Under the pieces are notes generated by a model that was not told where the DNA came from, ran no database searches, and saw nothing but the letters and a program-made list of their open reading frames with translations. Shown here one piece after another: positions 7,690 to 45,880 of a stretch of DNA of 64,000 bases (its first letter is position 1; each line of letters begins with the position of its first letter). The position numbers were made by a program, and so were the translations under genes. The stretch lies in NCBI GenBank assembly GCA_951406725.2, contig OX597825.1:84072001-84136000 (forward strand), written 5' to 3'. This DNA is from Octopus vulgaris. Taxonomy: Eukaryota.

Positions 7690-7865
7690 AAGAAGAATAT
7701 ATTAATCACTAAAATTCGAACTTAGTCTAATTTTCACGTTTTAGTATTTGCAGTTTTTACGATTTTCCAATTTTCCAATATTGAAATAAACTAGTACTTT
7801 CATGCGTTACGCAATCATCAGATTTATGCAGTGACAGCCGTATTTCACAAGTGACAACTGTGAGA
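7690..7865 (-). mobile_element. Short hammerhead-bearing repeat, HHR family 1 (Penelope pseudo-LTR-like)
   Basis: Sits between TA-rich microsatellites and carries a complete hammerhead motif. Penelope affiliation is inferred from that motif. Confidence 0.5.
7786..7827 (-). ncRNA. Minimal type I hammerhead ribozyme, apparently intact
   Basis: RNA: AUAAAU-CUGAUGA-UUGCG UAA CGCAU-GAAA-GUAC-UA-GUUUAU. It has a 6-bp helix I, a 4-bp helix II with a U.U at its base, palindromic helix III AGUACU and cleavage triplet CUA. Confidence 0.75.
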
Positions 7866-7893
7866 TATATATATGTATATATATATATATATA

Positions 7894-8102
7894 TAGTAAA
7901 TCCCCAAAACGATGAACGAACACAAAAAACAAAAACGCGAGGACGTGGTACATATAAAGTATTAGCAGACGCTCAGGGAAGGAAAGAGAGATGGTTTAAC
8001 GTTTCGTGCAACGCTCTTCTTCAGGAACGGAGGAAAGTCCAATCGAAAGGAAGACAGAGGAAGAATATCGCCAACGATTCACATGTGATTACATTTTGAA
8101 AT
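7894..8102 (-). mobile_element. Hammerhead-bearing repeat, HHR family 2 (copy 1)
   Basis: Collinear with 27583-27798. The minus strand contains GUUC-CUGAAGA-A-GAGC GUU GCAC-GAAA-CG-UU-AAAC at about 7993-8029. Confidence 0.7.
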
Positions 8103-8771
8103 GTATATATGGGTGTATACACATACACGCACACACAACGTAAGCGTTTGGTTATATGAGAGAATAAGAAATCTGAACTTGTGGTAGTTTATAATTTCCT
8201 GTTCCTGTGGGTCTTTCTGTACTGATCGTATGATATGGTGCATGTTTTGAGGTCATCACTGTCTAATCTGATCTTAGTGCAATTAGTTGTTCTGTGGTGA
8301 GGTTGTAAATTTTGTGTTACTAAGTGGATATCGTGTACACAATAAAATAATTTAGTCTAAAATGTGTTTTTAAACGTTAATATTGTATTGTAGTATTTTA
8401 AAGATTTTGTGACTTGTTTTACAAAATTTGGCTTCATTAGTAACGTCACTGTTGGAAAGTAATCTCACGACAACCATTAGAAAGTTGTCATCAACCACAT
8501 AGCTATGAATCGAAAAAGAAAATAACAAAAATTATTTCATTCACACACAAAAAAAACGAACAAAAAACATGAAGGAACCATCGAGGAAGCACCATTTTAT
8601 TTAAAGTGACATTATTATTGACAGCAAAATGAAAAGAAAAAATCTAAAAAAACAATTATTAAGAGCTAAAAAAATAATTCAGTGCTTCTATCATTTTTTG
8701 TTTTTACAAGTCATAAATTCCAACCGCTTTTCCAATTTTTCCACCCATACAAAATTTTATTATCTCTATCG

Positions 8772-9020
8772 TAATTATTATTATTATTATTATTATTATT
8801 ATTATTATTATTATTATTATTATTATTATTATTATTATTATTATTATTATTATTATTATCATCATCATCATCATCATCATCATCATCATCATCAGCATCA
8901 TCATTATTATCATTATTATTATTATTATCATTATTATTGTTGTTGTTGTTGTTGTTGTTGATGATGTTGTTCGTCTTATTATTACTATTATCGTAGTTGT
9001 TGTTGTTTGTGTTGTAGTTG
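8772..9020. repeat. Compound trinucleotide microsatellite (ATT)n(ATC)n(GTT)n
   Basis: Read directly from the sequence. Confidence 0.95.
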
Positions 9021-9650
9021 TTTTCGTTAGGCAATGTTACGCATTGACTAGTCTAATGGACGTTCAGTGACATCCAGATATAGCGGAGAAGTGTCCATTA
9101 AAGGAGATACTTGTGTTCAAGAATTGCCAAAGATAAGAAGCATATAAAGAGCTGAGTTAGATTTTTATTAGCAATATATTCCCGTAGTCTTGAGAGCATG
9201 AAATAACATAATGTTAACGTCTACCACGAAAATGTATCGCTCGCGTGCGCGCACACACACACGCGCACGCACCTCCAAATATGTATATACATATATATAT
9301 ATATATATATACATATATATATATATATATATATACACATATATATATATATACACACACACGTAAGTCCATAGTTATGTGTATATATGTGTGTGTATAT
9401 GTGTGTGTATGTGCATGTGTGCGTGTATATAATTATATGTGCCTATATGTATGTACGTATGAATGCATGTTTGTATGATAATATGAAATATACGTCTGTG
9501 TATGAATGTACATTTACATTAAATCACACTCCTATCTATCTATCTATCACTTATATATATATATATATATATATATATATATATATATATATATATATAT
9601 ATATATAATAATAATAATAATAATAATAATAATAATAATAATAATAATAA

Positions 9651-9845
9651 TGGTATGACAACAAAAGAATGAATGAGACTTCGATATTATGTAAAATAGA
9701 GGAATTTATCTATAAATATAATATGTGACAATTAGTTGGTTGTCATAATAAAACTCAGAGTTTCAGAAGTCTGCTCCGGCATCTCATCAATTATTGAGAT
9801 GCCGGAGCAAACTTCAGACCCGGTATCGAAAACTAGCTAATTGTT
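9651..9845 (-). mobile_element. Hammerhead-like repeat, HHR family 3, with an inverted duplication
   Basis: Minus 9747-9795 reads AAUAA-UUGAUGA-(19 nt)-GAAA-CUCUGAG-UU-UUAUU. There is a perfect 15-bp hairpin at 9772-9786/9795-9809. Core C3 is U and helix II is poorly paired. Confidence 0.5.
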
Positions 9846-10340
9846 ACACACACACACACACACACACACACACACACACACACACACACAGAGTTATATA
9901 TATATACATACATACATATATGGCCGCAGCCTTCGGGTTGAAACATTTTTAAGGATTTAAGGATTTTATATATACAAGAATTTGGTAGACGGAAACTGAA
10001 AGAATCCCGTCATATATACATGCATACATACATATACACACACACACATTCACACATTCACACACACGCACAAACACACACAAACACACACACACATGTG
10101 CATATATTTGTGCATGCGTTTGTGTCTGGTGTCTGTAGTAAGTGGACAGTTAGGTAATTATGAGAACTAGTTAGTTTTGACAGTTCTATATGCCCACTAC
10201 GCCATATGTTCAAGGACATATGGCGTAGTGGCTAAGAGCACAGGCTACTAACCCCAGGATTCCGAGTTCGATTCCAGGCAGTTACCTGAATAATAATAAT
10301 AATAATAATTTATTTTTTATTCTATTTAATTTTTTTTTAG

Positions 10341-43476: not shown

Positions 43477-43655
43477 TTGATATTTAAATACCGATCTTAT
43501 CTGGTGGCTATCATGGGAATTGTCCAGTTATTTTTTTAATAGTTTATTTCGTCACTTTGTCTTCTCTCCTGGTACTATAAGAACATTTAATGTGGTTTAA
43601 GTTTTGACTGCTATTTCCAGCGTGTGGTGGTATCTCTTAGATACCCTAAATTATA
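43477..43655 (-). mobile_element. Unclassified element of about 180 bp with a hairpin at each end
   Basis: Collinear with 50164-50317. Contains GGTATCT-AAG-AGATACC and a GATATTTAAATA(T/C)C palindrome, and is flanked by (TA)n. Confidence 0.6.
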
Positions 43656-45019
43656 TTTATATATATATATGCACATGCATACATACTACGTACATATGCA
43701 CATACGTATATATATATATATATATATATATATATAACTGTATGCTTGAAAGTATACGTAATTAATTCTTGTGCTGGTACAAAGCCAAATATTTGCAAGA
43801 GAGGAGCAATAATCGATTGAATAGATGACAATGTATTCTGAGGATTTATTACTTCGACTGCAGACGAAATGTTAAGTCAACGCTGATGATATTTCAACTG
43901 AAAATAGTAAGTGATTTAACTAAATCCTCCAATTTATTTAGTCACTCATTTTTGGCACTTAATCAGGATTAAGAAAGAAGCTTATACTTAGATGCATGAC
44001 TTGCTGAATATAGTAGCCAAATCTACTATATTTAAGTTTGGGAGAAACATCAATGTGTCTCTGATTTAAGGTGGCAATGTCGTAGGTATACTATTGCTCG
44101 TATAGTTGTTTTATCACTAATTGGTAAAAAAAAAAATTCAGTTGAGATATGATGTTAACGTTCAAAGAAGGCGAAGATTGCTGTTGTATTGCTGGATAGG
44201 AGACTGAATATTATGAAATCCTGTTTCATCCATGCTAGAAGACGATACATATTACGAAAAGGCTGAAAAATAGAACCAACAGAAATTAATGGAAAACTTT
44301 ACAATTTTTACAGTTTCACCAAAAAAGTTTAACCGGTAAAGGAATGTGATAACAAAGTTTAGAAGCCATTCATGTATCGTAATGTAAATACATTGTGATA
44401 AGCAAAATTTACGGCAGTATTCGACCGGGGACAATATTTTCTGTGGACGCACTGTGTTTAAAACACAGTATCTGTATCAGAAGACGAACTCCAGCAGCGG
44501 CGATTAAAAGCGAATGAGAACCTTGTTTTTACCAACAGTTCATAAGAACATTATATAACATGTGAGACATGCAAAGAATGTACAATTTTATGTATCGATA
44601 TTTTCACACTAAATAGTTTAAAATTAGGGCCAACAGTATCTGACCCATCATGGAATTAGCGTCTGAGTTTTGTAGACAATTGAAACAACTGCCAAAACGC
44701 ATTAAATTTTATAAATAAGAGATAGCTTTGATAAATGAAATTACCTTCCGAATACGTCAATGAAAACAAAATTTGATGTACTCAAATTTTATACCAACAA
44801 CATTCATGATTATAAAATAAAAGCGATGGAATCGTGGATGGAGAGATTCTCTGATAAATTACCAAAAGTATAGAAATAAATTAATAACTGAAGAATTACA
44901 ATTTATTCTCGAAAATAACAATTCTGTATTTACTGTTAATTATTATCGACAATCTTGTTTATTTATTGATCCCATCTGATATTTACTTCATATTACATAA
45001 ATATGTTATTGATTGTGAG

Positions 45020-45333
45020 ACTGTGAGAGTTCTTGGAAGAATGATGGAGACCCAAGTAGCCATAACCTATGCAAATTTAGTTAGGGGGTACTTTTTAAGT
45101 GACAGTGTATTTGTTGTAAGCAATGAGAGCAGAGAGAAAATATATGAATTTAAAACAGATATTTCTTAATGGGGTAAATCATAATCTTCAATTTGTAATG
45201 GGAGACAGTCAAGACAAACAATTGCTTAAAGATATCTTAGTAACAGAAGTCAATAACCGATGAGAGATGGGTAAATGTTATGCATTCAGAACCAAAATAA
45301 AGTCTACACTTTGCTTCGCACCACCGAAAACAC
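45020..45333 (+). mobile_element. Penelope-like reverse transcriptase remnant
   Basis: GRMMETQVAITYANLVRGY (cf. the PLE motif G..MGT..AP.YANL.MG), FLNGVNHNLQFVM..KQL..DIL, and LHFASHHRKH (cf. YL.F.S.HP.H). Confidence 0.7.
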
Positions 45334-45398
45334 TAGAAGAAATATTTCATTTTATTTAACCAGAGCAAAAAAAGGAACAACTGAATCCTACATAGATG

Positions 45399-45722
45399 CG
45401 AGGTGGTATCAAAACATTTCTGGACTGGTTCTCTAGTGTGCCAACATATGGAAGCACATGGTTATGTGTGCAACGAGAGCTAACAGAGAGCTTCATGAGG
45501 CAGTGTGTCGAGTGACATCGCTGTGTTTATTTCTCAGGTTGTGGAATTTGTGTTTTTGTGATCACGTGTATGCTGTAGTCTGCGATTTTGTCGTAGACAG
45601 GAACGAAGAGCCAACGTGAAATTTTGTGTTAAACTTAGGAAGTCTGTTACTGAAACACTGAGCATGCTTCGGCAAGCTTACGGGAACGAGTCCAAGGGTC
45701 GAACGCAATGTTTTGAGTGGCA
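45399..45722 (+). mobile_element. mariner-like transposon 5' fragment
   Basis: Terminus CGAGGTGGTATCAAAACATTTC and N-terminal RANVKFCVKLRKSVTETLSMLRQAYGNE..RTQCFEWH. Confidence 0.85.
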
Positions 45723-45724
45723 TC

Positions 45725-45880
45725 TTTCGGCTGATATACCTTTCGGCCTTCATCAGGTGAAGGCTGGAGAGTATATCAGCCGAAACATTGTGTTAACAAC
45801 AAACGAGATGAGGACAAATACCCGTCAAATGTAAATAATGTAAATAATGTACATAATTCCTCTTCTCTTAAATATAGAAC
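45725..45880 (+). mobile_element. Family G / HHR family 4 tail preceded by an inverted partial copy
   Basis: TTTCGGCTGATATAC (45725-39) pairs with GTATATCAGCCGAAA (45771-85). The minus copy carries CAC-CUGAUGA-AGGC, and the plus copy starts at AAGGCTG. Confidence 0.8.

Follow-up and report, generated by a model that had tools for sequence, protein, structure and literature searches.

Do the hammerhead-like motifs scattered over a short stretch of octopus DNA belong to several unrelated retroelement families, and did the ancestors of these families carry ribozymes of the kind known from Penelope-like elements (PLEs)? The stretch analysed, hereafter the window, is 64,000 nt of the Octopus vulgaris contig OX597825.1 (positions 84,072,001 to 84,136,000). 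All within-window counts of copies, repeats, hairpins, open reading frames (ORFs) and expected matches refer to this full length. It is AT-rich, animal-like DNA with a GC content of about 34%. An initial annotation had reported minimal type I hammerhead ribozymes with a palindromic helix III at eight sites, here labelled A to H. All eight exist at the positions reported, and their palindromes (AGUACU, ACGU, ACUCUGAGU and ACUCCGGAG) are as they had been read. We suggest that the sites are probably decayed insertions of at least five to six unrelated families of short, non-coding retroelements, the master elements of which each bore a PLE-type minimal type I hammerhead.

The type of motif had been named correctly. 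Minimal, dimer-dependent type I hammerheads are known from the pseudo-long terminal repeats (pseudo-LTRs) of PLEs (Cervera and De la Pena 2014, PMC4209133). Their hallmarks are an extra nucleotide between A9 and position 10.1, a G10.1-C11.1 pair, a palindromic 15.2-16.2 segment and a short helix I, and the first three of these were found in two repeats of the window, E/F/G and B/C. The E/F/G family has three copies of 94-196 bp that are 88-91% identical:

10486-10676, (+) strand: copy E, with the motif GACAC/CUGAUGA/A/GACUG-10 nt-CAGCC/GAAA/UG/U/U/GUGUU at 10574-10619.
18366-18561, (-) strand: copy F, with its motif at 18423-18468.
45722-45854, (+) strand: copy G, with its motif at 45749-45794 and the core CAGGUGA (5/7).

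Copy E possesses a complete core (7/7), the extra A, G10.1-C11.1, a helix I of 5 bp and a helix II in which four of five positions pair, the remaining one being an A.C mismatch. In copy F helix II is a perfect 5 bp, one position of helix I is mismatched, and G12 has become A, so that GAAA reads AAAA. Copy G is 5'-truncated within the CUGAUGA box and is preceded by an inverted duplicate of its helix II-to-GAAA segment (arms 45722-45739 and 45771-45788). The three copies share the same 3' endpoint and a 9-nt tail repeat of variable number, which in E is of the (AATGTAAAT) type. Their 5' ends differ, those of E and F running into (AAT)n.

The majority consensus of the three copies, GACAC/CUGAUGA/A/GGCUG-10 nt-CAGCC/GAAA/CG/U/U/GUGUU, is a flawless minimal hammerhead of the PLE type: it has the extra nucleotide that follows A9, the G10.1-C11.1 pair, an ACGU helix III and U17. 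It matched the strictest PLE-type descriptor, which none of 400 shuffled sequences did, and the minimum-free-energy fold of its monomer includes helices I and II. Across the three copies 86.7% of the proposed pair cells were paired, as opposed to 21-57% when the partners were slid. A perfect ribozyme is thus present as the family consensus though each copy is flawed, and this matters for the way "ribozymes" are counted in genomes. Because every difference between the copies is disruptive, the family appears to fit dead, neutrally decayed copies of a ribozyme-bearing master element.

The initial annotation had each family carrying a hammerhead, and this could not be upheld: only two of the eight listed sites, A and E, hold an intact motif. 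Site A is the following:

7786-7827, (-) strand: site A, an intact minimal type I hammerhead motif, AUAAAU/CUGAUGA/UUGCG-UAA-CGCAU/GAAA/GUAC/U/A/GUUUAU.

Its core is complete (7/7), helix I has 6 bp, helix II has 4 bp and helix III is AGUACU, the sole flaw being a U.U at 10.1-11.1. It lies in an island of about 200 nt with (TA)n on one side and (CA)n(TA)n on the other. We considered whether A might be a part of the B/C unit described below and rejected this, as the B unit ends in a (TA)n run and A lies just beyond it.

The first descriptor used in the search for such motifs, which was canonical, strict and without a bulge, was too narrow, and it was rebuilt with the extra nucleotide and G10.1-C11.1 following Cervera and De la Pena 2014. 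Site A alone matched the strict canonical form, a level reached in one of 200 dinucleotide shuffles and in none of 200 once the palindrome was required. The combined descriptor was matched by A and E. It is expected to match 0.015 times per dinucleotide-shuffled window, and two or more matches occurred in none of 400 shuffles. Graded by the quality of the individual sites, the chance expectation per shuffled window was 0.013 for motifs as good as H, 0.053 for D, 0.24 for B and 1.3 for C. The intact motifs A and E stand far above chance; motifs of B and C grade are near it.

The other listed sites belong to the second repeat, B/C, which is about 240 bp long with copies that are 78% identical, and to two single-copy sites:

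7876-8116, (-) strand: copy B, with the motif CUGAAGA/A/GAGC-GUU-GCAC/GAAA/CG/U/U at 7993-8029.
27565-27811, (-) strand: copy C, with the motif CCGACGA/A/GAGC-UCC-GCUC/GAAA/CG/U/U at 27683-27717.
23867-23911, (+) strand: site H, CUGAUGA/GCCCGU-GAACUU-ACGAGC/GAAA/CUCCGGAG/C/A/GCG.
9747-9818, (-) strand: site D, a hammerhead-like 3' half, GAAA/ACUCUGAGU/U/UUAUU, with UUGAUGA before it.

Copy B, bordered by (TG)n/(TA)n runs, has an intact core, one mismatch in helix II and a helix I that is not contiguous. Copy C has simple sequence repeats (SSRs; period 6 or less) at both sides. Its helix II is perfect, U4 is changed to C, and helix I is missing.

Site H has an intact core, a helix II with five of six pairs, a perfect 8-nt palindrome, C at 16.1 and a helix I of 3 bp, and its predicted dimer forms an intermolecular helix of 8 bp. 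A type III reading of the same site can be constructed, since a GUC upstream supplies U16.1 and C17. In that reading helix III is mismatched and helix I is a 3-bp hairpin. Downstream of H lie (AAATA)n and then a short interspersed nuclear element (SINE). Membership of H in this abundant neighbouring repeat was considered and rejected, the repeat being an unrelated element derived from transfer RNA (tRNA).

In site D, C3 is U, and the supposed helix II belongs instead to a 22/24-bp hairpin, in which it is the 3' arm and pairs with the upstream flank (arms 9763-9786 and 9795-9818). We read D either as a copy truncated at its 5' end and bearing a short inverted duplicate or as a product of chance.

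A further CUGAUGA...GAAA combination lies at 14406-14448 on the (-) strand and is absent from the original list. Its helix II (UGA/UCA plus CAGCUU/AAGCUG) is long and interrupted, and GAA is followed by the quasi-palindrome AGGUCU. This combination has no helix I and is probably not a hammerhead.

Site I, also absent from the original list, was found by a scan at the grade of D. It lies in a larger element that is present twice in the window, once in part:

50161-50813, (-) strand: element I, with a hammerhead-like motif at 50312-50372, UAUUCAA/CUGAAGA/irregular helix II/GAAA/UCCAGGA/U/C/UUGAAU.
43455-43670, (+) strand: second, partial copy of element I, in which 43517-43670 is only the part 3' of the ribozyme.

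In this motif the boxes CUGAAGA and GAAA are intact, the palindrome is 9 nt long (AUCCAGGAU), position 17 is C, helix I has 6 bp and helix II is irregular. The unit of element I is 484 nt, of which about 1.08 tandem copies are present, as seen from a 38-nt direct repeat (50645-50682 and 50161-50198) that is 97% identical. At its 5' end there is an inverted copy of 116 nt (50698-50813 against 50553-50668, 91% complementary), and its 3' end adjoins (TA)n.

From one family to another the architecture is retained and the stems differ. The second half of the claim that the stems vary while the core is kept did not fare as well, as the core is kept in only four of the eight listed sites. Sites A, B, E, H and I have both core boxes unaltered; mutations of the core were found in C (U4C), D (C3U), F (G12A) and G (5/7). 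Apart from these core mutations, the defects of the six sites that are not intact are the lack of an A15.1-U16.1 pair in H, of helix II in D, and of nearly all of helix I in B and C. A15.1-U16.1 followed by H17 is present in A to G and in I; site H has C at 16.1. Helices I and II are both present in A, E, F, H (with 3 bp in helix I) and the E/F/G consensus. The extra nucleotide between A9 and 10.1, always an A, was found in B, C, E, F and G. It is absent from A, D and H, and I is irregular at this point. Six of the eight listed sites have G10.1-C11.1 (B, C, E, F, G and H), the other two having U.U (A) and G-U (D). The segment of 15.2-16.2 and loop 3 is palindromic in A, B, C, D, E (via G.U), F, H and I; G alone has C.A. 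The five repeat families that had been proposed are an overstatement: only B/C and E/F/G are repeated within the window, and A, D and H occur there as single copies.

The way in which the elements are inserted gives a second line of evidence. PLE insertions are strongly 5'-truncated, are often partial tandems, and often have at the 5' end a further copy that is inverted and itself 5'-truncated; the hammerhead motifs of the PLE are situated toward its 3' end, and insertion is biased to microsatellites (Craig et al. 2021, PMC8557442). In the window we found 5' truncation with a common 3' end in E/F/G, inverted 5' copies at G, D and I, and a partial tandem in I. Of the nine tight hairpins in the window that are not made of SSRs, two correspond to the inverted 5' duplicates of D and G. 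In both, the 3' arm of the hairpin begins at N7-G8-A9, spans helix II and ends at G12-A13, with the turn falling within the CUGAUGA box. The same short inverted-duplicate geometry thus occurs twice in unrelated families (9763-9818 and 45722-45788). Further tight, non-repetitive hairpins were noted at 10191-10234 (17/19 bp), between sites D and E, and at 5539-5578 (14/16 bp).

The relationship to PLEs that had been proposed is consistent with the insertion architecture but is not backed by any remnant of their proteins. As 139 ORFs contained no trace of a reverse transcriptase or of a GIY-YIG domain, only resemblance connects the elements of the window with PLEs, and they are at most non-autonomous or truncated PLE derivatives. 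We infer that the RNAs were once cleaved and were moved by a PLE enzyme, and that the families are numerous across the genome. In the published model, a transcript with at least two copies, as in a partial tandem or a pseudo-LTR, would let two units pair via their self-complementary helix III. Each paired unit would then cut after H17 and release RNA of unit length. A PLE reverse transcriptase and GIY-YIG endonuclease encoded elsewhere could copy this RNA into nicked DNA, with a preference for microsatellites, and the expected result would be 5'-truncated copies, short inverted 5' duplicates and partial tandems. The inserted copies would then decay neutrally.

Element I bears on one step of this scheme. 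Cleavage is predicted between 50319 and 50318, and the homology of the 43k copy begins at window position 50316, 2 nt past the predicted site. The segment 43455-43520 is a copy of the inverted head and is joined via a GAAT microhomology, which places the breakpoint 2-6 nt after the predicted cleavage site. The chance of a breakpoint in such a position is about 7 in 484. A junction of this kind would result if a self-cleaved RNA were reverse-transcribed, and it is the only indirect hint of site-specific self-cleavage. A bolder proposal would be that the ribozyme fold itself marks retrotransposition junctions: D and G are truncated in the CUGAUGA box with helix II duplicates of 18-24 nt, and the copy of I starts 2-6 nt past the predicted site. 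We regard this proposal as doubtful. If it were true genome-wide, the positions of insertion junctions would be a genomic footprint showing that hammerheads fold and cleave in vivo and that the reverse transcriptase switches templates where it meets the ribozyme. The window offers three junctions that fall on the ribozyme core or the cleavage site; were the pattern to recur genome-wide, it would be indirect evidence for folding and cleavage in vivo by these weakly active ribozymes in the course of retrotransposition.

Several observations count against the explanation by decayed PLE-type insertions. A Pfam search of the 139 non-repetitive ORFs of at least 55 aa found neither an RVT nor a GIY-YIG domain, only a weak match to HTH_48. 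None of the Rfam hammerhead models (Hammerhead_1, Hammerhead_3, HH9, HH10 and Hammerhead_II) reached its gathering threshold at any site in the window, to which the search was confined. SSRs are numerous in the window (138 blocks covering 17% of it, with a median gap of 216 nt) and give rise to hundreds of spurious sub-threshold matches to Rfam microRNA families (mir-297, mir-3149 and others). Since these dominated the whole-window search at E <= 10, small windows were used instead. At the same E-value no hammerhead model matched A, B, D, E, F or I in this way, C and G not being so searched. Site H gave a weak Hammerhead_3 match over 23853-23904 (17.8 bits against a gathering score of 48.5, E = 0.14). 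Outside the window, no copies were found in viral, metagenome or GTDB genome contigs with the E-family anchor, the exact A sequence or a 24-mer of the SINE as queries. On motif grounds alone B and C are near chance level, and the sites were first picked by eye, which inflates the apparent pattern. Site A is without G10.1-C11.1, H is without U16.1, and D and I are without a regular helix II. The differences among the three E/F/G copies include none that is compensatory, and they give no evidence of covariation. An SSR lies within 100 nt of seven of the nine sites, compared with 37% of random points (P = 0.015); this proximity is weak evidence because SSRs cover so much of the window. Finally, the cleavage-site junction of element I is a single case.

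The alternative that survives best also starts from hammerhead-bearing retroposons. The sites could derive from other non-autonomous elements of this kind, either non-LTR retrozymes with circular RNAs or SINE-like elements such as Sm-alpha of Schistosoma, and not from fragments of PLE pseudo-LTRs. Site A would suit such an origin, as its helix I (6 bp), its helix II (4 bp) and its 1-bp helix III with a 4-nt palindromic loop have the canonical metazoan sizes. The islands and units, at about 200-480 nt, are in or near the size range of retrozymes, element I is longer than one unit, as might result from rolling-circle copying, and the window lacks PLE protein remnants. However, the copies are dispersed and 5'-truncated, and no tandem arrays of motif-bearing units were found in the window, element I with its 1.08 units alone coming near to one. 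The B/C and E/F/G motifs have the PLE-specific extra nucleotide and a longer helix II and lack the canonical loop-loop design. We consider this origin unlikely, and it largely merges with the explanation by PLE-type insertions, since a 2026 preprint makes the case that the retrozymes of animals derive from PLEs.

Chance is less probable still. CUGANGA and GAAA boxes with fortuitous complementarity could be picked out by eye in AT- and purine-rich repetitive DNA, and under relaxed criteria shuffled sequence does produce matches. When a single mutation in a box was tolerated, E, F and H alone qualified, and shuffles yielded 0.70 +/- 0.90 matches; at a relaxed level like that of the initial annotation they yielded 9.7 per window, and the expectations for B and C grade point the same way. 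The window contains 15 CUGANGA...GAAA pairs against 2.9 in shuffles, but most of them are without helices, so this excess is no evidence in itself. Rfam was essentially silent. Against these points stand the two intact motifs where 0.015 were expected, the low expectation at the grade of H, a perfect E/F/G consensus assembled from flawed copies, and the coincidence of motifs with retroelement-type boundaries and inverted junctions. As a general account chance is thus very unlikely. Taken site by site, it is unlikely for A, E/F/G and H, and possible for D and for B/C individually.

It had also been proposed that the motifs could affect intronic transcripts. A few conserved amniote hammerheads with roles in mRNA biogenesis are known from the literature and A and E are intact, so one could imagine ribozymes that are still active, are kept by selection in the host and process the transcripts around them, possibly intronic ones. 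Yet the copies are decayed, with differences that are all disruptive, and without two intact copies with a matching helix III on one strand the dimer that is needed cannot form. In vitro, cleavage by PLE minimal hammerheads is poor even in dimers (Cervera and De la Pena 2014, PMC4209133), and a Pfam scan of the 139 ORFs detected no gene or exon in the window. An effect on intronic transcripts is thus not sustained, and current use by the host is highly improbable.

The last alternative concerns the DNA next to copy G, where the relic of another element lies:

45498-45722, (+) strand: mariner-type transposase relic, N-terminal helix-turn-helix (HTH) region; context only, not part of the ribozyme element.

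An ORF at 45562-45831 begins with 55 residues of mariner HTH (661 matches among 1.84 billion representatives, best E = 3.9e-13; Pfam HTH_48 E = 0.0026). The homology stops at FEWH, about 45722-45727, cut exactly where copy G starts, and no continuation of the transposase was found downstream of 45722. A search of outside collections with this ORF gave two distant matches only. A JGI metagenome contig of 13.5 kb (3300042615, Ga0466711_257977) carries a related mariner that is 76% identical in DNA to the window relic and matches it only up to 45722. Nothing besides the mariner fragment is common to this contig and the window. The contig is transposon-rich and eukaryote-like, with HTH_48, DDE_1, BrkDBD and CENP-B_N genes. 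By eye, the E/F/G motif had suggested the linker after the first HTH of a mariner transposase (RRFKGGR...EDDERSGRP), and this candidate was rejected.

That the E/F/G motif is a by-product of mariner coding sequence is practically excluded: copy G does continue the open frame of the ORF and a few HMMER alignments do reach residues 73-88, but the homology ends at the start of G, the E, F and G peptides in all relevant frames score like shuffles in Smith-Waterman comparisons with the closest transposases (z -1.6 to +1.9), and there is no mariner sequence upstream of E or F. Because the homology ends at 45722 and the peptides score no better than shuffles, copy G appears to adjoin the truncated relic and not to be a part of it. 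A protein search with the ORF over copy F gave no match.

The surroundings of the sites are rich in other repeats. The tRNA-derived SINE next to H is present in at least seven copies (23964-24190, 12079-12265, 55509-55717, 59417-59576 on the (-) strand, 15929-16123 on the (-) strand, 1979-2088, 40962-41081 and 35381-35481). Its consensus starts at the 5' end with GGCGCAGGAGTGGCTGTGTGGTAAG, contains GGTTCAGTCCCACTGCGTGGCACC and GAGTGGATTTGGTAGACGGAAACTGAAAGAAG internally and ends in (TA)n/(TG)n tails, which probably seeded many of the microsatellites of the window. It may resemble a cephalopod SINE, a likeness that carries no weight here. ARAGORN detected no tRNA in the window, and neither the motif sequences nor that of the SINE were found in searchable literature text. 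Relics of DNA transposons are also present. Two ORFs, 26885-27284 on the (+) strand and 14479-14727 on the (-) strand, look by eye like Tc1/mariner DDE and HTH fragments (e.g. QQDSAPCHTS), an unconfirmed reading with no Pfam or PDB support at the thresholds used. A single assembly gap of 100 N lies at window positions 693-792.

Compared with known systems, the sites share the catalytic core boxes of Rfam Hammerhead_1 (RF00163) and Hammerhead_3 (RF00008), though every one of them is below the gathering score. The metazoan non-LTR retrozymes (Cervera and De la Pena 2020, PMC7229834; Li et al. 2026 preprint) resemble them in being short, AT-rich, non-coding units of a few hundred nt whose type I hammerhead acts in dimeric form, and in particular resemble site A in its canonical helix sizes and element I in its slightly more than one unit. 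Unlike the dispersed, truncated singletons of the window, retrozymes are tandem repeats of about 170-400 bp with circular RNA.

The insertions match those of PLEs (Craig, Yushenova, Rodriguez and Arkhipova 2021, PMC8557442) in their 5' truncation, partial tandem, inverted 5' copy, motifs toward the 3' end and microsatellite-biased targets. They differ in the inverted copies of D and G, which are only 18-24 nt long and turn inside the ribozyme core, and in having no ORF for a reverse transcriptase or GIY-YIG endonuclease.

The minimal hammerheads of PLEs (PMC4209133) differ from the sites in several respects. The window has no flanking PLE ORF or full pseudo-LTR, the extra nucleotide is missing from A and H, position 10.1-11.1 of A is U.U, the palindromes of D, H and I are unusually long at 8-9 nt, and most copies have inactivating mutations. 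The likenesses are the type I topology, the CUGANGA and GAAA core, the palindromic short helix III and the short helix I, together with, in B/C and E/F/G, ACGU ahead of U17 and the additional nucleotide that separates A9 from 10.1. Several unrelated families in one genome, mostly as isolated truncated copies of high variability, are a further likeness. In the literature, minimal hammerheads number thousands per animal genome and fall into many families, one coral having more than 6000 motifs in 16 families. Because minimal dimeric hammerheads in PLE-type retroelements are already established, what the window adds is new sequence families and no new principle.

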